64,000 bases of DNA from Diadema antillarum (taxonomy: Eukaryota), in assembly GCF_040938485.1 (NCBI RefSeq), contig NW_027271609.1:1116001-1180000 (forward strand). Direction: 5' to 3'. How positions within the stretch are numbered: the first letter of the stretch is position 1; the number at the start of each line of letters is the position of its first letter. Both the position numbers and the translations under genes were made by a program. The notes under the pieces are model-generated. The model ran no database searches and was not told where the DNA came from. It saw only the letters and a program-made list of their open reading frames with translations. This document shows, in pieces, positions 26,691-37,928 of this stretch.

Positions 26691-27823
26691 GTCAGTCTCA
26701 TAAAATGGGACAGAATGCGATACGGATCAGAAAGGTATAATGATCTAAACAGCTCCTTCCATGCCTGCCACACGCACATCTGAGGTGTTTACGTCACTGG
26801 CGGCACACGGCAGAGCGAACGATAAAGAAATGAATGCGGCTCATGTGGAAGTACCAGAGGAAATTGAGGTTGAGAGTTGTGTCTCTGCGTCGCGTGAAAC
26901 GAAGCAACCGTGCTAACCAGGGCTTTCTCTGAAGAGTGACGAAACTTGTACGGGGCTTGTCATCAGGGCCCTAACGACTAAACGTAATTAAATTGAAATT
27001 CGTCAGCAATAAACAAACAGAAGCAAATCCGAACACACGTTCGGTCATGTCAGGTAAGAGACCTTTCTAACGGATGAAATATCCATGGACAAAGTCATAC
27101 TGCAGAAAGAAAGTAGCACAACATGATAATAAACTTTCGTGTACGTTCCTGAAATTCCAGTAACCTCTCTAGACAAACATTTCGATAATTATGGTCATTT
27201 TGAAGTCATGAGGTCATCCAGATTACTGCTATCTAGGGACAACTCAAATACAGCCATTATGATCTTGGGAAGAATGACACTATGAGTAACACTGCTTACG
27301 CCCCTCCCCCTCTCTTTTCCTAAAAGAAAAAAAAAAGTATTGATTTCAGATTTTCATATGTTAGAAAGCCATCTACATGACTACTACCAGTAAATGGATA
27401 TGAAAGAAATGAGTTTCATTACGCCCTTTCAGGTTGACTAAGACCTTGTTTGTTTAACTCCATGTCAAAAATGTTTAATGTTAACATTTTTGTGTGTGTG
27501 TAAGTCTAAAGTGAACTACATTGACACATCTCCCGACTACATTTCCCAACTACATCTCCCAAATACATTGGCTAACTGTTGTCAAGGGGTGTTTACTGAT
27601 CAAGTTCAGCTAAATTCTGGGTGTGTGTTCAGTCTTTAACGGTTTACAAATGAAAGATGACTAAGGTGGTGTGTAGATTGCCCCTGCATTCGTCTCAGCG
27701 GAGGCAAATCAGTAAATTAACTCTTGTACAAATATCAAGAGTTGCATAATCATCCTGTAGTTCCTAGTTATCCCTAAATACCGTGACAGAAATAATGATA
27801 TATTTATGAATACATGATGATAA

Positions 27824-27873
27824 GGGGTCATTCACAATTATCAACATTTTCACAAGTGTACAAACCATACACT
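27824..27873 (+). repeat. Left TIR of the Zator element
   Basis: GGGGTCATTCACAATTATCAACATTTTCACAAGTGTACAAACCATACACT; matches the reverse complement of 35180-35229 with 6 mismatches. Confidence 0.95.
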
Positions 27874-27941
27874 TTTCAAGACCCCCCCCTCCCCCCAAAA
27901 AGTGTACGAAGAAAATGTTGATTTTTTCCCCCACATTTTAT

Positions 27942-28053
27942 AGCTACGGTCACAAAGGTCCTTGCGAACGCCGTACGAAGGACTAATTTGTACAGCCACA
28001 ATGGGACAAAAATCATTCGTATGGCGTTCGCAGGGCCATTTGTGACCGTAGCT
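27942..28053. repeat. 38-bp inverted repeat (hairpin or tiny MITE) in the Zator 3' subterminal region
   Basis: Arms 27942-27979 and 28016-28053, 34/38 complementary. Confidence 0.85.
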
Positions 28054-28058
28054 TTATT
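28053..28058 (-). promoter_or_regulatory. Candidate polyadenylation signal (AATAAA) of the transposase gene
   Basis: AATAAA on the minus strand about 60 nt after the stop codon. Confidence 0.55.
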
Positions 28059-28117
28059 TTCACTGTGTTCAGTTCTTGCTTGGTCTGTTTTTTTTTTTTT
28101 CCAGTTTGTTTCCCTCC

Positions 28118-28322
28118 TTAGTTCTTGCTTGGTCTGCCTTTCTTCAGTTTGTGTCCCTCCTCATCCTGGTGCTTCAGCAGTCGATACCGAGTGGGATACT
28201 TCTGGTCACACACTGGGCATCTGTGGCTGGCCTTGTCCTGATTGGCATCCCTCAAAGCACGTACTCCACCGTGGATCAATTTGGTGTGCTTCTCTTCATC
28301 GGCTTTGCTGGTGAAAATGTAT
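28118..28322 (-). CDS. Zator transposase exon 3 (C2H2 zinc fingers, basic tail, stop)
   Basis: Acceptor tttactttcag|A in phase 2. Splicing gives CTHCRYIFTSKADEEKHTKLIH (C-x2-C-x12-H-x4-H), followed by CPVCDQKYPTRYRLLKHQDEEGH and KKGRPSKN*. The three exons total 3,018 nt, an exact multiple of 3. Confidence 0.85.
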
Positions 28323-28780
28323 CTGAAAGTAAAGGAAAGAGAAGGCCACATTAGTTTCTGTATTTAGAGCACAAGATCAGGAGGGCAGAAATATGCAGAA
28401 ATAATGTGCCCATGGGGCAATTAATACACTGCTGGGAGATAGAAGTTAATTTGAATAGCCACAGCTAGGATGAAAAAGTCACTATTATAAAATTATATAT
28501 ATCTGCAACAACATATTCTTCAGTCACAGTGTAGGTTACTGATTTCCAAAATGTGGTAGCCCACTGGGTTTATTTTAAAATGTAGAGCAACCACACAGTT
28601 CTGTACTATGTTCATGTATTTCAGGGCAAATCTCTTCTGTGATGGCTGGGCTATATTAAACACATAGAGTTTATTATTGCTTTGATTTTTTAAAACTCTT
28701 TCGCCCCTGTTGTCCAATGGTCTATGCATGTATTGTATCAGTAGCAATTCAATTTTTATTCCAAATATAAAAAGGAAATG

Positions 28781-29140
28781 AATGAGCAACAACAAAAAAT
28801 GGAGAATATGAAAGATATTGAATACATGTACAGTATAATTATATTGTTTTGAATTGTGTAATTTTAACTTGTGGAAAAATGAACTCGAAATGAATAAATG
28901 AGCAACAAATAAATTGAGAATATGAAAGATATTGAATACATGTATAATTATATTATTCTGTATTGTGTAATTTCAATTTGTGGAAAATGTACTTGAAATG
29001 AAAATGAGCAACAAATAAATGGAGAATATGAAAGATAATGAATACTTGTATAATTGTGTTTAATATTTCATATTGTGTTTATATTTTGATTTGTGGAAAA
29101 ATTAACTTGAAATGAACTTGAAATGAACTTGAATGAGCAA
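28781..29140. repeat. About 3 copies of a degenerate 105-130-bp AT-rich tandem repeat in transposase intron 2
   Basis: AATGAGCAAC...GAGAATATGAAAGATA recurs at about 28781, 28897, 29003 and 29132. Confidence 0.85.
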
Positions 29141-29373
29141 CTAACTAGGAACTTTAGTCCATATTTCAAGATTGTATAGACTTCTGTGTTCTGTGAAAAC
29201 ACACCAGTGCAGAGAAAATAAAACTAGTGGTGTGCTGAGAAACCTATTCAAAAATGAACTATAGATCACTGATATCATATACAGTGTCTTTTATTCACAC
29301 TGCATATGACATTAAACAGTAGTAAGTAAAGAAAAAAATTTATTAGAAATTATATGCAGCACAATAATCATAC

Positions 29374-31883
29374 CTGCAGTGAGTGCAGCTGCGAGCTTCA
29401 AAGTTCTTCAAGTGCTGATCTGGACTACTGAAGGCCAACGATCTTTCCAGCTGGCGGAGTGTCTTGTAATGGCCTGGGTGTTCAGGGTCAGGGGTTATTG
29501 GAGGGAACAGCCATTTGTCACCACTTGGCATCTTCCACACTTTTGAAGCCCGGACTCCATCTTCCATGCACTTACATGTGCTTTCTCCACAACTGCCCTT
29601 GCGGAAGCACACAAAGCCACTTCTCCTGTCCATATGCGCAGAGATGTACTTCCACTCATCATGGGCCTCAGACAAATCTGAAGACTCCCGGATTCCACGT
29701 AGACTGGAGTGGAACATGTTCCGAACAACAGTGTATGTCCCATTTTCATCACCTGCGTTGGGTAACACAGCTTTAGAAGTGATCCTGAATCCATCGTGGA
29801 CTCTCCCATCCCAGTACATGTTCAGACGGTTCAGAGCATTTTCGAACACAATTGTCTCCTTTTCCAACTTCTCGTCAGGTGAAATACTCTGAAGAGCAGG
29901 TGGAACCGTCTCACCTGGCAGGCATGCCGGGAGAGACACACCTGCCAGAAACTTCGACAATGGAGACCAGAGGTGCTCAATTGGATTGTAGCGAGAGAGA
30001 CCAGCTGGCATGCACGTACTGATCAACATGTCATACTTTCCCTCCTTCCAAAGCTTACCAAGGAAGAATTCATTCAGATTCGTTTTAGGTGTCCAATCTG
30101 GGCCGCCGTCAGTTACAAGTACCAAGATGGGCTTGTCTAGACTGGGATTGTCCTTCATTATCACTTTCAGATCATTCATATGGTCTTCGATAGTTGTGGA
30201 AGTGTTTTTCACAGTCCGATTGAAAACCCAGAGGGGACCAGTGGAAGGGACTTCCACCACATCTCTGCCACATTTGTCCTTAGTGCTTGGGGCTTCAGCC
30301 TCTTTCATCTGAAGTTGCAGGTAGCCATCAGGTTCGATTAGATAGCCAGGGACTGGAAAATCATGGTCAGCATAGTGTGGGGTATCATCGCCAGGAAAAA
30401 ATGTTCTCAGCTGGTGGTATCTGGACACAGCTTGTCCTCCAATATGGATCTTGGCCTTGCTGTCACATGAAAATGCTACACATTCATCTGGATACATTGC
30501 ACACATCTGTCGCACGTTCGAGACAGTGGCAAAATATTCATGTGCATTTGGATTGTCTTTGCTGACATCACATGACTTCGTCCCAACACGTATATCAAGT
30601 GCGTCCTTGTGTCTGGCAGCTTCCCTTGAGTTGACTCTTGCAGGCTTCATCAAGTAGTACACTTTCGTCCGCGATATAGTATCCAACCCCTCCACATTTT
30701 CCAGAAGGTGTTTGCGGACATCATCGAGGGTGACTCCACAGGAGGTTGCAGTCCCAGTTCGCCTGCGTATGTGTGCACCAAAACCATGTAGCTGTACAAA
30801 GTTCATCATCACATCAAGCAGCTGTGGGTACTTTTCTTGCAGTGGTGTTTGTCCTGATTTCTGATAGAAAAAAATGCCATCTTCTGAACCATTATCTGAC
30901 TGCTGCGTGCTTGGCAAGTCCTCGGTCTTATCAACAGAATCCAGGGTTAGGACCTCATACACAAGATTGGGTCTGAATACCAACTCAACATAGTCTAGAA
31001 GAACGTAATGTCCCCCTCTGGCAACACACAGCAATGGAAACATATCCAAGAGTTCATCAACAGCATTCTTGAGTTTGTCGTCTGTCAACTTGAAATGTTC
31101 AGCTAAAACATGGCCTGGTATCCCCAGCATGTCAGAGCGATGGCACATGTCCTTTAGGCTAGGGAATGAGTACAACTGCATAGCATTCAGTGGATCGAAG
31201 AGACTTTTGTCCCCATTGGATTCCATTTCGGTAATTTTCTCTACAGCTTTCTCCCAACTAAGGCCTAGAGAATTCCCGGCAAGCAGTTTATATTCAGAGT
31301 TGCCCGTCAGCCGATTGAACCTCCTGGCATTCTGTGCTCGAACACTAGCCTGCAGACTGTCAATTGCTGTTTCTAGGGCAGTCTTTGCATTGAACAGAAC
31401 AGGAAGCATTTCCAGCATTTTCGTCAGTTTCTGCTGACAGGACTTAAGCTGGAGACCAAGATTCCCGCTTACTACTTTTAGTTGCGCAAGCTGTGTCAAA
31501 TGGTGCGACAGTTCACTGATACTGGACTCTGCCTTCTGCTGCCTTTGTGAAACAACAGAACCTTTCTTCACAAAAATTTGCTGTTTCTGCCACGAAGCAA
31601 CTAGAGGGAAATAATCTATAGCTGAAGCCGACACTGACGTCAGAGCTCTCATAAATTCTGGATGAGATTTCACGTCCTCAGTGAGTAGTTCCGTTGAAGA
31701 GATTTTCAATTTTTGACAGAGGAATGATACAGCAGTTATTTGTCCATCCAAAATGTGATTTTGAACTGTGCTTGTATTCATCTGAGAAGAACCAACCGTT
31801 TCCTCTGGCACCTGAACTGTCACAAGAACTGGCTCTTTTTCTGGCTGGCCATTGTCATGCAAATCTTGATCCACAGTTGCTGC
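29374..31883 (-). CDS. Zator transposase exon 2 (coiled-coil region plus DDE catalytic core)
   Basis: Part of the 867-aa ORF. Acceptor tctttatttcag|GCA at 31883 and donor CAG|GTATGA at 29374 (phase 2). Motifs AHxRRRT, FSCDSKAKIHIG (D at 30462-30464), DHDF, VTDGGPD (D at 30108-30110) and SRYNPIEHLWSPLS (E at 29976-29978, D-x43-E) are typical of Zator/TP36-like transposases. Confidence 0.9.
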
Positions 31884-32051
31884 CTGAAATAAAGACAAAT
31901 CATGTTCAATGTTAGTTTTTGAAAGTGGGTCAAACATCAAGGTCAAGGGTCAAAAGTAAAAAAAAAAGTTTTGGTATAATGTGCAAGGTCTTGCTGCTGG
32001 TAATACAATATGAAAGCCATATCTGCTCACATTCAAAAGTTATGACCAAGG

Positions 32052-32607
32052 TTAAAGCGGAATTAAACCCACCTATGTGCATTTTTATTATATGCAGAAA
32101 AATCAGAGAAAGAAAATGGTGAAAGTTTGAGCAATATCAGATAATCCATTCAATAGTTATCAATTTTCAAAGTTTTACCAAATCTGCGTAATGGCCACCT
32201 AGGGGATCCTTGAGTTGGCCACTGAGCCAATTTCTGTGATATGGACAACTCTCCATTCGTTTTGTACACATATTTTCACAATTTTTTTAATCAAGAGTAT
32301 ACATTTCCCCCTTGCTTGTTATTCTTATTCTTGCTTATTCTGTCCTTTCATAAAAATGAAAAATAGTGGTAATCTGTGTGGAGAGTTGTCCAAACTCTAA
32401 TACACTGATATTAGGAGAGTTGCCAAAATCAAGGATCCTCATAGGTGGCCATAACGCAAATTCTTATAGCAAAACATTGAAAATTGATAACTCTTGAAAA
32501 GATATCCGATTTTGATGTATAAAAAAAAAAACACCATTTTCTTTCTCTAATTTTTCTGCATATATATATTGAATGCAGATAGATGTCCGAGTTTAATTCC
32601 CCTTTTT
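32052..32607. mobile_element. TTAA-type foldback MITE nested in transposase intron 1
   Basis: Left end TTAAAGCGGAATTAAACCC and degenerate right end GTTTAATTCCCCTTTT. About 120 bp of subterminal inverted similarity plus an inner IR (GGCCACCTA..GGATCCTTGA). Confidence 0.65.
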
Positions 32608-33746
32608 ATAAAAAAACATATTGAGTACTTGACCACACCAAGATGTTAAAAAATTATTAAGAATTATGTACCAAAATATTCTGTAAAATATGAGCCCTCA
32701 TTTGTCACAGTCATATGTTAGAATGGCTCGCAGGAATTTTTTAAAGGCAACATAAGCTGCTAATCCTTAAAATTGGCAAAATTTAAAGATTCAAAATCAC
32801 TATTATAGGTGCAAATTCGCAACTTTATATATTGGAAAGGATTGCCAAGTGTTCATATTTTTATATTGTCTACACAAATCAAGTTTCACTGAATTGTAAT
32901 GAAATTAGAAAATATTTGTTGCCAATTTGATATTCATTTCCAAATGAGATGTGGTCTTGTACTCTGTGGGTTCAAGTTTCTGTGAGACAGACAGACAGAC
33001 AGACAGACAGAGTGGCAGACGGATGCATGAATAACGTTCCCTTCCTTTCCTGAAATAAAGCAGGAAAAGCAAAAAGAAAAAAAAAATACCCGAAATCAAA
33101 TGTGCAGTTATTGGCTATTTATCGTGCTACTGGTCTCCAGGGACTACAAGGAGTTTGTGCCAACAATTCCTACGACTCTTTCAACTTCATTTGTACTTCA
33201 AATTTGATGTCTTAAAAACACATTAATTTTTTGTTGGAATAAAGCATACATGTAATCATTGCTCACAGAGCAAAAACATTCAACAATGCTGGTTTCGAAC
33301 CCCCAATGCATCGACGAGCATAAAAATCGCTGCCCTCAATTTTAATATTGAGCTGTGCGAGATTCGCTGCCAGGGTGGGGTTGTCTACAAATATACATAT
33401 CATCATTATGAATTGCGCACTGGCCGTGCACAGGACTCATTCTATTCGGATTTTTGTGTATTCATCTGTGCCACAGAAAGAATTGCCCGCCAGTGCCGTA
33501 TGTAGTCCCTGGTCACATTTTCACGATAATGCCTGTTTGTTCAATAATCATGGGGGCTGAAAGTGGGGATATTTTTTATTACAATAGATCTCTACTTCTC
33601 TTGAAAAAGAGATCTGGTAGCTCCCAGCGACTAATCATAAAATTTCTAGGATGACAATATGTGCACACTACACGCCACCGTGGTGCACGGCGGCACCTTT
33701 TCCAACTTTCAAATCTTGTTCAAACAAATCTAGATCTAGATCTATA

Positions 33747-33958
33747 CCGTATGTACACGGGAGAGAACTGGGCCCCACAACATTCAGCTCAATAAAATTA
33801 AGTTTTTCTTGCTATTGCAAGAACAATCAACAGCTTCAAAAACCCATAAACTATTCCTGGATTTTGGTATTAGCTGTTGATTATTCTTGAAATAGGAAGG
33901 AGAACTGAATTTCGAGTTTACCAAGGCCAGGGGGCCCCGAGTTCTCCCCTGTAAACGG
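33747..33958. mobile_element. Tc1/mariner-like MITE (TA TSD) nested in transposase intron 1
   Basis: TA|CCGT...GGAGAACT..GGCCCC and GGGGCCCCGAGTTCTCCCCTGTAAACGG|TA. Confidence 0.6.
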
Positions 33959-34426
33959 TAGACATTACTGGTTGATCTATTACTTAGACTATTCTAGATA
34001 TGTAGGCAAATTTTCCTAGAAATAGTTTGATTTTAATTTGTATCTGAATATTTTCTACATTAACGCAATTTATGATGGTGGAATATGAATTCAAATGAAA
34101 TCTCTTACTTCCTCAAAATGGTCGTAAAGTGCGGCAAAAGTCATTAAAAATTGTGCGCAGAGTAATAATTGAGCGGGGCTGAGCCAGCCGCACCGCCGGC
34201 TGAGCCCGCCGGCCAGTAGCGCCGGGCGGCTGGGCCACCGGTCCGTGTTGCACTCCCAGTCCCACACTCTACAGCCTGCTTCAGGCCTGCTTCATAATCG
34301 GGGTAATTCTTCGGCATGTAAACATTGAAATACAAATTGCCATCAAAATATATGATAGAAAATCTGCCTACATACCAATAGAAAACAATTTATACACGAA
34401 TCTCAAATTTTACTGAAATTAGTTAC

Positions 34427-34729
34427 CTTTGGAACGACTTGGAAGAACGATTTGATCGTCCCCTTCTGATTTTTAACACGCTCCATCTTCAGCAGGGCTT
34501 TGTCCAGAACTTCAGTGAAGAGAACACATTGCGTAGACGCAGTGCGCCACAACTTTTGACCTTCCAACACGGCATCTGCTCGTTTCCGGTGCTCATTCAC
34601 AAACACAAAAGCATTTATGAAGTTCATATATTTGTTAACGGGATTTTTGTGAACAATGCACCCTCGCTTAAGGAGGAATTCTGTTAGATTTTCCGGGTCA
34701 GTAGGTCTATTGTCCCTATTGTTCGCCAT
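34427..34729 (-). CDS. Zator transposase exon 1 (MANNRDN...FFQVVPK, 101 codons)
   Basis: ATG in good context (AAGATGG). Open frame ends at an AAG|GTAACT donor in phase 0, matching the phase-0 acceptor of exon 2. An upstream in-frame ATG at 34738 is an alternative start. Confidence 0.75.
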
Positions 34730-34826
34730 CTTTGACATTGTTTCCACGTACGTACGTACGCGCACATTTTTCTACATAATAATATAATATACCTAGATAC
34801 CAAAGATCGCATGCGCGCGTATATCG

Positions 34827-34972
34827 ACTACGCGACTTTCGGTGGCACAACTCACCAACCTTGAACATGAAGAAGGTGCGTAACTATGCATTCTTCACTC
34901 GCTGTTTCATTTCGGATCCAAAGTCGGTGATTCGTGTATTAACCGAAAGTCGTGTAGTGTGCGGGGGCCTAA
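34827..34972. repeat. 17-bp inverted repeat, possible remnant of a Harbinger-like MITE, upstream of the transposase ATG
   Basis: ACTACGCGACTTTCGGT (34827-34843) versus ACCGAAAGTCGTGTAGT (34942-34958). The right end is GTGTGCGGGGGCC|TAA; no matching left terminus is visible. Confidence 0.55.
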
Positions 34973-35179
34973 GATAGCTATCTCTCGGTCATAAAGTGAA
35001 ACGATGCCGCGAGAAATTGTGGGATTTTGATGGAGTGCGCGAACTATTCGGTCAGCGTGGAAAGTTTCCAGCGAGACGAGAGGCCGGGCCCGTGATCAGA
35101 CGGGATGGGCGCGAGAGTATGGATCGACATTTTTTATAATTTGAAAAGCGTACGCCGGGTGCTGACCCCCTCCCCCCCC

Positions 35180-35229
35180 AGCGTACGGTTTGTACGCTCG
35201 TGAAAATGTTGATAATTGTGAACGGCCCC
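35180..35229 (-). repeat. Right TIR of the Zator element
   Basis: Reverse complement reads GGGGCCGTTCACAATTATCAACATTTTCACGAGCGTACAAACCGTACGCT. Confidence 0.95.
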
Positions 35230-35683
35230 TAAGTAAATTGATACAATAATGTTTAAGTAACAAAGCATTCCATGTTTATATTAACTTTGAGAAACAGAGC
35301 AAAATCAAATTGACAGCCCACAGAAAGTTTTATAAAAATTTGACAAGAAACATAAAGAAAACAGTTAGCAAGTAAATCTTTTTTTTTTCTTGATGCAACA
35401 GAGTGTATATCAGCCCTAGAGAAGTAGGGCCTAAATGAGATGTCTTGAAATGTATGTTTATATATTTAGTCTCACATTGATTTGTAACCTAATTGATGTA
35501 CGTGAACAAATATCATACTGGGAATAACATTTGATTCAAAGTGAACTGAATCGTGTCATGGCCTCAAAGCTTAGAGTCAAAAGTGAATGATTGCTTGAAG
35601 AGACAAATCCCAATGTGGCCATATTTCAAGACACTGCAGTAATGTTAACTACACAAACAGAACTTTGGATCAATGTATCTCTA

Positions 35684-35915
35684 CACTCTAAAGAATGAAA
35701 TGGTAAATCAACATTTTAAATTTTGTCACCCCTCCAACCTGTTTGTAAATGTTAAATCAAACACTCAAAATGTAAACTCTAGCACTCAAAATGTTGAACT
35801 ACCATTTCAGAAATTGTAAATCCAACATTTTGTTTGTTAAATTTAACATTTACACAAACATCCGAGGAGTGACAACATCTAAAATGTTGATTTACCATTT
35901 CATTTTTTTAGAGTG
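35684..35915. mobile_element. CACTA/EnSpm-like MITE
   Basis: CACTCTAAAGAATGAAATGGTAAATCAACATTTT versus AAAATGTTGATTTACCATTTCATTTTTTTAGAGTG; flanks TA and CA. Confidence 0.7.
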
Positions 35916-37928
35916 CAACATGGTGTGGGATTGCACTTAAATTTTGCTTAAGGAGGAGGCTAAGGAAAGATGATCTATATGTCTGGCTGTGCACGTGTGA
36001 AACAGTGATTTGTCAAAGTTGTGGAGGGAAATTACTGACTGAGCATTTGCACATGATCAAGAGGAACTTGATCTCGATAAAAGTAAAATGTGCAGGAGCG
36101 AGAGGATGAGATTAACAGCTGCAACTTCCAGGACAACCTACCCCCCTTCCAAATCATCGGCAGCAGGACAGCGGTAGCTGCATGGCCTGCCCGAGACTGA
36201 TTTTCGAAGGAGCGCCTTGTTTACGAAACCTGGGACTGAGCTGAGGCTGCATATTGGAAAGACAAGGAGAGCGAGAGAAGGAAGGAGATGTTTGTGACAT
36301 TTCTTGAGTTTCAGTCGGCAAACAAGGAAAAGTTTGCAGCACCCTGCCCACGGGAAGATGACAAAAAGGAAGAAGGGACGGGCATCTCGGGAGCCCGGCT
36401 GACAAAGAGAGAAGAAGACGACTCCCCCGACTTCAAATTGACACCTTCCCCTTGACGAATCATTAGTCAAAGCGTCGGAGACAAAAGGTGAACTTTTGTT
36501 ACGTCCTCCCGTCACTTTCGCTGTCAGTCCCCGAAGGAACACAAATGTGACATGACATTGTGGCTGACTAATGGAACACAGATGTATGAACAATGACCTC
36601 CATTCGTAAGGGGGAAAGGGGGCTGAGGTTCCACTCTCCATGCAGGAATATATGACATACTGTTCGTATAGTATGACTTCTTTTTTTCTGACGTTCATGG
36701 GATGAGCAACCACATGGGCCATGATCATGAATTCACTCTTTGGACTTATGTTGTGATTTGCTTTACTTTTACCAGTTTGGGGGCCACAAGGTACGACACC
36801 ATTACATCCTACTCCAGCATATCTCTAGACTAAAAGTCTTGCCTGGGAGAACACTGGCATCCTCTGTCAAATGGAAAGTCGCCCTTGACAAAATTAATGT
36901 TGTCCTCTCTTTCAGACTTAGCCTGGTTGCACAGAATATCATACTCTGTGTAAAAAGGAAGCGAGGTTTATCCATGCTGAACCGTCGTCCTTCTTTCCAT
37001 CTGTGCCTGGATATACAGTCTCCCTTGACCTAATTCTAGTGTCCTCTGTCACATGAAAAGTTACCCTCCTGTTAAGATTGTCCCCCTTTCTCAGTCTGCA
37101 CTGGGATGTATATCATCACCTTGGCAGATATATTATCCTTTGTTATACAGAAATATGATCCTACCATGAATGTTGTCTCCCTTTTAAGCCTATCCCTGGA
37201 CAGGAACAGAAGAAAAAGTACCCTTTATCGCATTGAAAGTTATCCTCCATGAACTACTGTCCCCTCAGGTCCTCCATGGAAAGCTGTTATCATTTTGACA
37301 AAATAGTATCAATAATATGATGTCTATCAGACAAGCACAAATCTAATCCACTGCTACACTACCATTCACTCTTTTCTAAAGTTACAAATTCATTAGAAAA
37401 GTGTTCAAGAAATCCTACATCTACTGGTACTTCTCTTAAGCATTGAATGACATTGCACTTGCTTTTTAAATCAACACAATATTTTCAGATTAAAATCCTA
37501 CTGGAATAATTCAATATGCTAGGTGAAAGGTTTGCAACTTAAAGGCTAGATTTACCTAATTTTCTACTGGATGAGGACGACATCCATGACAAATATATCA
37601 GGGCTTTGTCAATTTGAAGTAACAGCAAGTTGGGCTACAATACATATTCATTATGGTCATTCTTGCACTATCAGAAGCAGCATTCAGTTTATCCTAGAGA
37701 TGATGAATTAATCAGCCACAGTAAAACAAAGAAGGCACTATACAGTGGGTGAGCCTGAGGATATGAAAATTAATGACTGATTGTCACTTGTTTGAACTAC
37801 ATTTGAGAAGGTCAATCGATTGTATTATAGGATACTTCATTTTCGCAAGGCAGAAATTATCAATACTTACGTGCACACGCAGTTGCCAAACTTAACTGTC
37901 GATGATGAGCTCCACTCGTGAATTCACG

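Follow-up and report, generated by a model that had tools for sequence, protein, structure and literature searches.

Organization of the Locus

The window analyzed here is a stretch of 64,000 nucleotides of the genome of the sea urchin Diadema antillarum (G000:C721:1116001–1180000), and positions 27824–35229 of it are occupied by a transposon of 7,406 bp with its gene on the minus strand. The element is bounded by terminal inverted repeats (TIRs) and a 3-bp target site duplication (TSD), and its spliced gene is predicted to encode a transposase with an RNase H-like DDE domain. It is very probably an autonomous cut-and-paste transposon of the Zator superfamily, a eukaryotic relative of the bacterial ISAzo13/TP36 transposons. 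The genome searched comprised 1,754,659,819 bases in 2,963 contigs, and all protein searches were run exon by exon. The features of the element, in window positions, are listed below; contig C1528 carries the allele without the element.

27821–27823: left TSD, TAA; a single TAA in the empty allele on C1528, two in the filled allele
27824–27873, plus strand: TIR at the gene-downstream end, starting GGGGTCATTCAC; inner part AGTGTAC-AAACC-ATACACT
27881–27896: C-run, separated by TTTCAAGA from the gene-downstream TIR, which it follows (sequence reading)
27874–28117, minus strand: 3′ untranslated and subterminal region, with a hairpin of 44-nt arms (27939–27982 and 28013–28056)
28118–28322, minus strand: exon 3, made up of the last base of the junction codon, 67 codons and the stop TAA (28120–28118)
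Within exon 3, minus strand: histidines of zinc finger 1 (28288–28286 and 28273–28271) and the whole of finger 2 (C35 to H57, 28219–28151)
28323–29373, minus strand: intron 2, 1,051 nt, GT…AG
29374–31883, minus strand: exon 2, 836 codons plus 2 nt; residues 1–339 are an N-terminal region without assigned function, residues 340–720 a helix-turn-helix-like segment and the RNase H-like DDE domain, followed by a Cys-rich tail and the cysteines of finger 1 (29387–29376)
30462–30464, minus strand: catalytic D474 (exon-2 numbering), codon GAC, in strand β1
30108–30110, minus strand: catalytic D592 (exon-2 numbering), just after strand β4
29976–29978, minus strand: catalytic E636 (exon-2 numbering), at the start of the helix after β5
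31884–34426, minus strand: intron 1, 2,543 nt, GT…AG
34427–34738, minus strand: coding part of exon 1, no known domain; in-frame ATGs at 34738 and 34729, 101 codons from the second
34739–35179, minus strand: 5′ untranslated and promoter region, with the G-run GGGGGGGGAGGGGG directly inside the upstream TIR
35180–35229, minus strand: TIR at the gene-upstream end, starting GGGGCCGTTCAC; inner perfect palindrome AGCGTAC-AAACC-GTACGCT
35230–35232: right TSD, TAA (empty site on C1528 and sequence reading)

Element Boundaries and Insertion Polymorphism

The two TIRs are 50 nt each and agree at 44 of 50 positions, with ends of the form GGGG…CCCC. The repeat finder had paired 27823–27873 with 35180–35230 (51 nt, 88%), a pairing which includes one flanking base per end; as the outermost paired base belongs to the flank, the true TIRs are 27824–27873 and 35180–35229. 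The junctions between element and flank read TAA/GGGGTCATTCAC… on the left and …GTGAACGGCCCC/TAA on the right.

The decisive evidence for these boundaries comes from the allele without the insertion. The left 1.2 kb of flank was found to match C1528:232788–233984 and the right 1.2 kb to match C1528:233982–235181, with an overlap of 3 bp, and the empty allele reads …GATGATAAGTAAATT… with one TAA only. This fixes the exact ends of the element and the 3-bp duplication, and it identifies the insertion as hemizygous. Both haplotypes of a single wild animal, whose heterozygosity is 2.52%, are kept in the 1.75-Gb assembly (PMC13511894). Empty alleles with a 3-bp flank overlap were found for all three copies tested, namely the window copy (on C1528), L002 (vs. 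C1151) and L003 (vs. C109), and a fourth empty site is present on C189. The initial annotation of this stretch had proposed 50-bp TIRs and a TAA duplication; both were borne out, the former with six mismatches and the latter by the flanks together with the single TAA on C1528.

Copy Number and Age of the Family

A DNA search of the diploid assembly returned 12 full or nearly full copies at 99–100% identity, and a protein search returned the same 12 loci. The expectation that other copies would carry these TIRs was thereby confirmed, with eleven further full-length copies and several short derivatives. The mean pairwise divergence among the copies is 0.095% (range 0.014–0.175%), whereas the alleles of their flanks differ by 1–8%. 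All three exons are open in nine of the 12 copies, and every copy keeps all splice dinucleotides. The short derivatives (~460–730 bp), which are older and non-autonomous, share both ends of the element at 83–94% identity (74% in one) and are flanked by TWA duplications, with three of the six loci being present twice as haplotig pairs. The family was mobile very recently, and it probably still is.

Two other accounts of these copies were considered and rejected. All flanks differ, so the 12 copies are not duplicates or haplotig artefacts of the assembly, and a domesticated host gene is at odds with the TIRs, the TSDs, the multiple copies and the insertion polymorphism.

The TSDs of ten complete copies lying in unrelated flanks were TAA in five, TTA in four and mixed in one. 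The mixed copy, L006 (G000:C166:1655794–1663212), is flanked by TAA at one end and by TTA at the opposite end. Contig C189 (G000:C189:1579359) joins the left flank of L006 to the right flank of another copy, L007 (G000:C183:711566–718984), through one TAA, and the allele of the right flank of L006 is found on C704 (G000:C704:620010). These flank alleles indicate that the two halves of a single insertion locus lie on different contigs, C166 and C183. The mean length of the HiFi reads was 6.8 kb (PMC13511894); as this falls short of the 7.4-kb repeat, the simplest reading is that contigs were mis-joined at near-identical copies, and the flank swap is probably of this origin, with ectopic recombination also possible. 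It should also be noted that swapped flanks still match half the time, so that a TSD match around an assembled copy is weak evidence.

Further Zator-like transposase families, 27–38% identical, were detected by the protein search in the same genome, some of them with long open frames. They include loci at G000:C974:89452–90930, C75:1081906–1083174 and C8:3095804–3097281, with matches of ~819 bp on C1340, C379, C458 and C44.

Transposase Gene and Splicing

Read from the ATG at 34729, the three exons give 3,018 nt with no stop or frameshift in the correct phase. All splice signals are canonical (AAAG/GTAACT and tttatttcag/G for intron 1, CAG/GTATGA and ctttcag/A for intron 2), and a ctaac branch site and a pyrimidine tract precede the acceptor of intron 1. 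The codon at the exon 2/3 junction is AGA (Arg), with two bases from exon 2 and the third from exon 3. Two in-frame ATGs, 9 nt apart, follow an upstream stop, giving a product of 1,008 aa (34738) or 1,005 aa (34729). The coordinates, phase and joined length of the exons proposed earlier stood, and only the single product length of 1,005 aa required amendment in view of the second ATG. The full gene had also been described as invisible among raw open reading frames (ORFs). This was not the case, as an 867-aa ORF (29343–31946) covering most of the gene was plainly listed, and splicing is needed only for the 101 residues at the start and the 68 at the end.

Exon 2 matches two NCBI proteins of D. 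antillarum, P0001 and P0003, at 100%. These NCBI EGAP models belong to other copies and contain the sequences …FFQVVPK/AATVDQ… and …CTHC-R-YIFTSK…, which are equal to the two proposed junctions (34427/31883 and 29374/28322). The NCBI annotation of this species drew on 12 RNA-seq runs. The second junction also completes a C2H2 zinc finger, with C-x2-C in exon 2 and x12-H-x4-H in exon 3, and a second finger follows; exon 3 was found to match Pfam zf-C2H2 (E = 0.002). The homolog P0007 of the sponge Dysidea avara is a single uninterrupted ORF of 855 aa across the site of intron 2 and both fingers, from which the exon 2/3 junction is taken to be right residue for residue. Homologs of exons 1, 2 and 3 occur in the same order in three elements of other assemblies (L023, L024 and L026), those of exon 1 lying upstream of the large ORF (39–45% identity, E 1e-9 to 9e-21) and those of exon 3 showing 50–62% identity.

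In addition, the NCBI models make use of an internal donor at 31796, by which residues 30–131 or 30–341 of exon 2 are deleted. As the stretch removed is conserved in relatives at 33–43% identity, the form with exon 2 unspliced is the full-length one; the shorter ones may be genuine isoforms or artefacts of prediction. No match was detected for exon 1 or for exon-2 residues 1–339 in Pfam, PDB sequences or the ESM atlas. A separate observation concerns P0003, a model in which the N-terminal part of a 7-transmembrane receptor (PF00001) is joined to the transposase. This is probably an annotation chimera derived from a copy in or beside a receptor gene.

Catalytic Domain and Predicted Fold

The proposed D, D-x43-E motif was recovered as D474, D592 and E636, with 117 residues between the two aspartates and 43 between D592 and E636. 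In an alignment of 47 sequences, with identities down to 27%, only eight columns are invariant and the three residues of the triad are among them. An AlphaFold model of the catalytic region made from a deeper alignment (pLDDT 85.8, pTM 0.73) shows the order β1-β2-β3-α-β4-α-β5-α, with D135 of the model in strand 129–136, D253 after strand 247–252 and E297 starting helix 297–306. An earlier model from 16 sequences (pLDDT 51) was discarded. The arrangement in the deeper model is that of an RNase H-like domain, with the first aspartate on β1, the second at the end of β4 and the glutamate on a downstream helix.

The nearest solved folds returned by Foldseek were the catalytic domains of Mos1, Sleeping Beauty and Metnase (3HOS, 5CR4 and 3K9K; E 2e-5 to 3e-4), followed by retroviral integrases and RNase H. 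These proteins share the RNase H-like DDE/D core and, judging by the model, their chemistry is probably the same; they show 8–15% identity and a TM score of about 0.3 by query, and their elements differ from that of the urchin in making a TA (2 bp) duplication and in a DD34D/E rather than DD43E spacing. In a shape search of the ESM atlas every named neighbor was a bacterial ISAzo13 transposase (TM 0.63–0.67 over 285–292 residues), with the unnamed neighbors being eukaryotic. The superposition on ISAzo13 spans ~290 residues, among them the helix-turn-helix segment that precedes the DDE core. When the 47-sequence profile was run against PDB sequences, the only matches were chance ones to designed repeat proteins, and no solved structure of a sequence relative was found.

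Probable Assignment to the Zator Superfamily

The only Pfam family matched by the catalytic region of the urchin protein was PF07592 (DDE_Tnp_ISAZ013, formerly Transposase_36; E = 0.053, below the cut-off), and the only NCBIfam match was ISAzo13 (NF033519; 2.7e-4, below the cut-off; the relative P0009 gives 1.5e-6). Both matches cover the catalytic residues. PF07592 was also matched by nine of 14 close relatives (E up to 0.1) and by 13 of 47 more distant relatives (E up to 0.001, best 2.1e-8). Aside from C2H2-finger models and isolated weak single-member matches on full-length relatives, no other family was found in the Pfam scans of the relatives, and there was no match to DDE_Tnp_4, DDE_1, DDE_3 or Transposase_1. 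As the single-protein scores lie far below the thresholds, the link to ISAzo13 rests on its consistency across relatives, on the ESM features and on the fold, and the relationship is one of remote homology. Running the PF07592 model against the complete genome was uninformative, as it returned nothing in D. antillarum or in 14 control genomes.

By ESM features, the domain was nearest to a eukaryotic cluster commonest in Mucoromycota and then to ISAzo13 clusters only (0.82–0.86). Zator has been reported in Rhizophagus, a member of Mucoromycota (PMC5751038). A profile of the catalytic region, run against 1.84 billion representatives, retrieved 2,719 clusters (E up to 0.001); the best 150 of these 2,719 matches reach only 1e-45 and are probably all eukaryotic. 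The expected relationship to TP36 is in agreement with the profile matches, the ESM features and the predicted fold.

In the literature Zator is paired with ISAzo13/TP36, both making 3-bp TSDs (PMC10045372, PMC5718144, PMC7386202), and is placed beside the IS630-Tc1-mariner group (PMC7386202). The urchin element has the 3-bp TSD, the TAA/TTA sequence of the duplication and the bounding TIRs expected of such an element. Bao et al. (2009) are said to have defined Zator by these features. The Zator assignment made initially is supported by the family matches, the fold, the TWA duplications and the other TIR-bearing copies.

Comparison with Related Elements

The Zator-1 elements of amphioxus (Branchiostoma floridae and B. 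belcheri) are likewise bounded by TIRs and have 3-bp TSDs of TAA or TTA (PMC12905397). Their insertions are polymorphic, which has been read as ongoing activity, with the authors stating that definitive evidence of transposition is lacking (PMC12905397). Compared by description only, they differ in having TIRs of 33 bp and copies which are short “arms” flanking cargo, whereas the urchin element has 50-nt TIRs and constitutes a complete autonomous copy whose gene has three exons. The bacterial ISAzo13/TP36 transposases (PF07592, NF033519) are the only families matched, and they share the fold and the 3-bp TSD (PMC10045372). They are unspliced proteins of about 310–540 aa (696 aa in one cluster), beyond which the urchin protein has ~440 N-terminal residues, the Cys-rich tail, two C2H2 fingers and two introns in its gene.

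A closer relative is found in the sponge Dysidea avara (L024:5075–8821, P0007), whose transposase is 53% identical to that of the urchin. Exon-1 homolog, DDE region and two C2H2 fingers succeed one another as in the urchin, and the sponge element has a TAA TSD, an upstream TIR followed by a G-run, and 51-nt TIRs which are 76–80% identical to those of the urchin. It differs in being compact (3,747 bp) and in having no intron at the position of urchin intron 2.

The ends are conserved more widely. GGGG ends together with matching TWA duplications are found in five of five complete relatives, which come from the sponge and from four further assemblies, and the TIRs of the two relatives that were aligned (sponge L024 and L026) are 51 nt long and 76–88% identical to those of the urchin. 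Each TIR holds a CGTAC-N5/6-GTAC core. On its inner side the gene-upstream TIR borders on a G-run in all six related elements, and next to the gene-downstream TIR there is first TTTY and then a C-run. Between the two ends of the urchin element, and likewise of the sponge element, the inner palindrome varies at mirror-image positions. The six TIR differences of the urchin element all set CpG against TpG/CpA, and it is invariably the gene-upstream end that carries CpG. As this pattern is common to all 12 copies and to the older short derivatives, the differences predate the burst and do not reflect decay of the window copy. The pattern is read from the sequences as a stable family trait, and the two ends appear to be functionally different.

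Proposed Mechanism

It is suggested that the spliced mRNA would be translated into a transposase of about 1,005 aa, in which the helix-turn-helix segment ahead of the catalytic core, and perhaps also the C-terminal fingers, would bind the conserved TIRs. The triad D474/D592/E636 would then cut the element at either end with the help of metal ions, as Mos1 and Sleeping Beauty do, and the ends would be joined to target DNA that is cut at TWA with a stagger of 3 bp. The target duplication would arise when the 3-bp gap is repaired. In this scheme TIR binding, metal-dependent excision and TWA integration would all be functions of the encoded protein. The hemizygous insertions, the 0.09% divergence and the intact exons of nine of the 12 copies are indirect signs that the element may be active.

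Alternative Interpretations

On balance, and with no great confidence, the family is considered to be a currently active autonomous Zator family of which the window copy encodes a working transposase. In that case the internal splices of the NCBI models could give truncated, possibly inhibitory isoforms. Several observations weigh against this interpretation or against the evidence used for it. Three of the 12 copies are broken, one by a nonsense codon and two by single-base frameshifts. The internal splices of the NCBI models remove 102 or 312 residues of conserved N-terminal sequence, so that the dominant isoform may be another than the full-length one, and the N-terminal ~440 aa have no recognizable domain. 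The perfect TSD match in nine of ten copies had to be downgraded after the L006/L007 swap, so that the empty alleles carry the argument. As to the family, the Diadema protein alone scores 13 bits for PF07592 against a cut-off of 26.9, and 20 bits for ISAzo13 against 200, and the label Zator is an indirect one. An unlikely but serious alternative is that the insertion is genuine and recent and that the transposase of the window copy is non-functional, the family being dead, regulated or moved in trans by another copy. At 0.09% divergence an open frame is expected by chance without selection, so that an intact frame would indicate youth and not activity; the broken copies are in keeping with such a family, and the internal splices could yield truncated isoforms. 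However, the full-length exons are identical or nearly so in nine copies, the catalytic triad is present, as is every residue that is invariant in the 47 relatives, and the hemizygous state of all three insertions tested implies that a source of active transposase existed very recently.

The remaining alternatives concern the assignment of the element and not its activity. An independent eukaryotic offshoot of bacterial ISAzo13, outside the Zator clade of Repbase, is suggested by the indirect nature of the label, by the 33-bp rather than 50-nt TIRs of amphioxus Zator-1 and by the support of only 73% for Zator monophyly in one broad survey (bioRxiv 10.1101/2021.09.26.461848). It is nevertheless improbable, since the best neighbors in the ESM atlas are eukaryotic clusters commonest in Mucoromycota, a group with reported Zator (PMC5751038), the length and sequence of the TSD equal those of amphioxus Zator-1 (PMC12905397), and a family of 2,719 clusters is not a small isolated lineage. 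The nearest solved structures, which are the catalytic domains of Mos1, Sleeping Beauty and Metnase, and the placement of Zator beside this group (PMC7386202) might point to a Tc1/mariner or pogo-type element of the IS630-Tc1-mariner group. This can scarcely be correct, as the empty sites show a TSD of 3 bp (TWA) and not TA, only the fold class is shared, DDE_1, DDE_3 and Transposase_1 are not matched, and the DD43E spacing together with the first spacer (118 positions from D474 to D592) matches the ISAzo13 profile region. PIF/Harbinger elements also make 3-bp TWA duplications. The TAA/TTA TSD and the TIRs starting with GG resemble theirs; however, an element of that type is considered next to impossible here given that DDE_Tnp_4 (PF13359) is not matched at E up to 1, that the element holds one gene only with no second Myb-like ORF, and that the nearest folds are those of Mos1, Sleeping Beauty and ISAzo13. 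Assignment to Zator is accordingly preferred.

Repeats and ORFs within and beside the Element

Intron 1 contains unrelated nested repeats, namely a palindromic unit of ~480 bp (window 32089–32564) with arms 97%, 88% and 90% complementary, and a dispersed repeat of 287 bp (about 32646–32928) with more than 25 copies at ~75% identity. These nested repeats account for much of the difference in size from the relatives of 3.6–3.7 kb. Intron 2 holds a tandem repeat (28777–29116) with a period of 106–114 bp and 2.5–3 copies at 82–86% match. An Rfam scan of 27000–36000 gave no match.

The right flank carries a ~230-bp repeat (about 35682–35915) with ~40 other genomic loci at 71–85% identity. Most of these match on both strands, for which reason it is called palindromic, and it represents a MITE-like family with no relation to the Zator element. 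An ORF of 196 aa (36138–36728, minus strand) lying just beyond the right end has no Pfam match, and no host gene was identified at the insertion site.

Significance

The superfamily itself is already known, and what is new here is a very young member which, as far as its sequence indicates, is probably active. Zator is among the least studied of the cut-and-paste superfamilies. No experimentally characterized Zator element was found in the accessible literature, in which mobility has been deduced only from polymorphism, in amphioxus and C. elegans. The two genome papers on D. antillarum make no mention of Zator, and about 30% of the assembly is classed as unclassified repeat. The present element is a candidate for a first laboratory study, offering a bounded autonomous copy, a gene model, catalytic residues, sister copies, derivatives and empty sites. 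This material suffices for an excision or integration assay, for addressing the choice of the 3-bp TWA target and for comparison with the bacterial ISAzo13 ancestors. If the family is indeed active, it would be the first Zator system open to biochemical study, with possible use in tool development.

For the organism itself, the 7.4-kb copies appear to cause contig mis-joins in the current assembly. D. antillarum is a keystone reef grazer which has been hit by mass die-offs, and hemizygous insertions of 7.4 kb represent structural variation within it and population markers for it.

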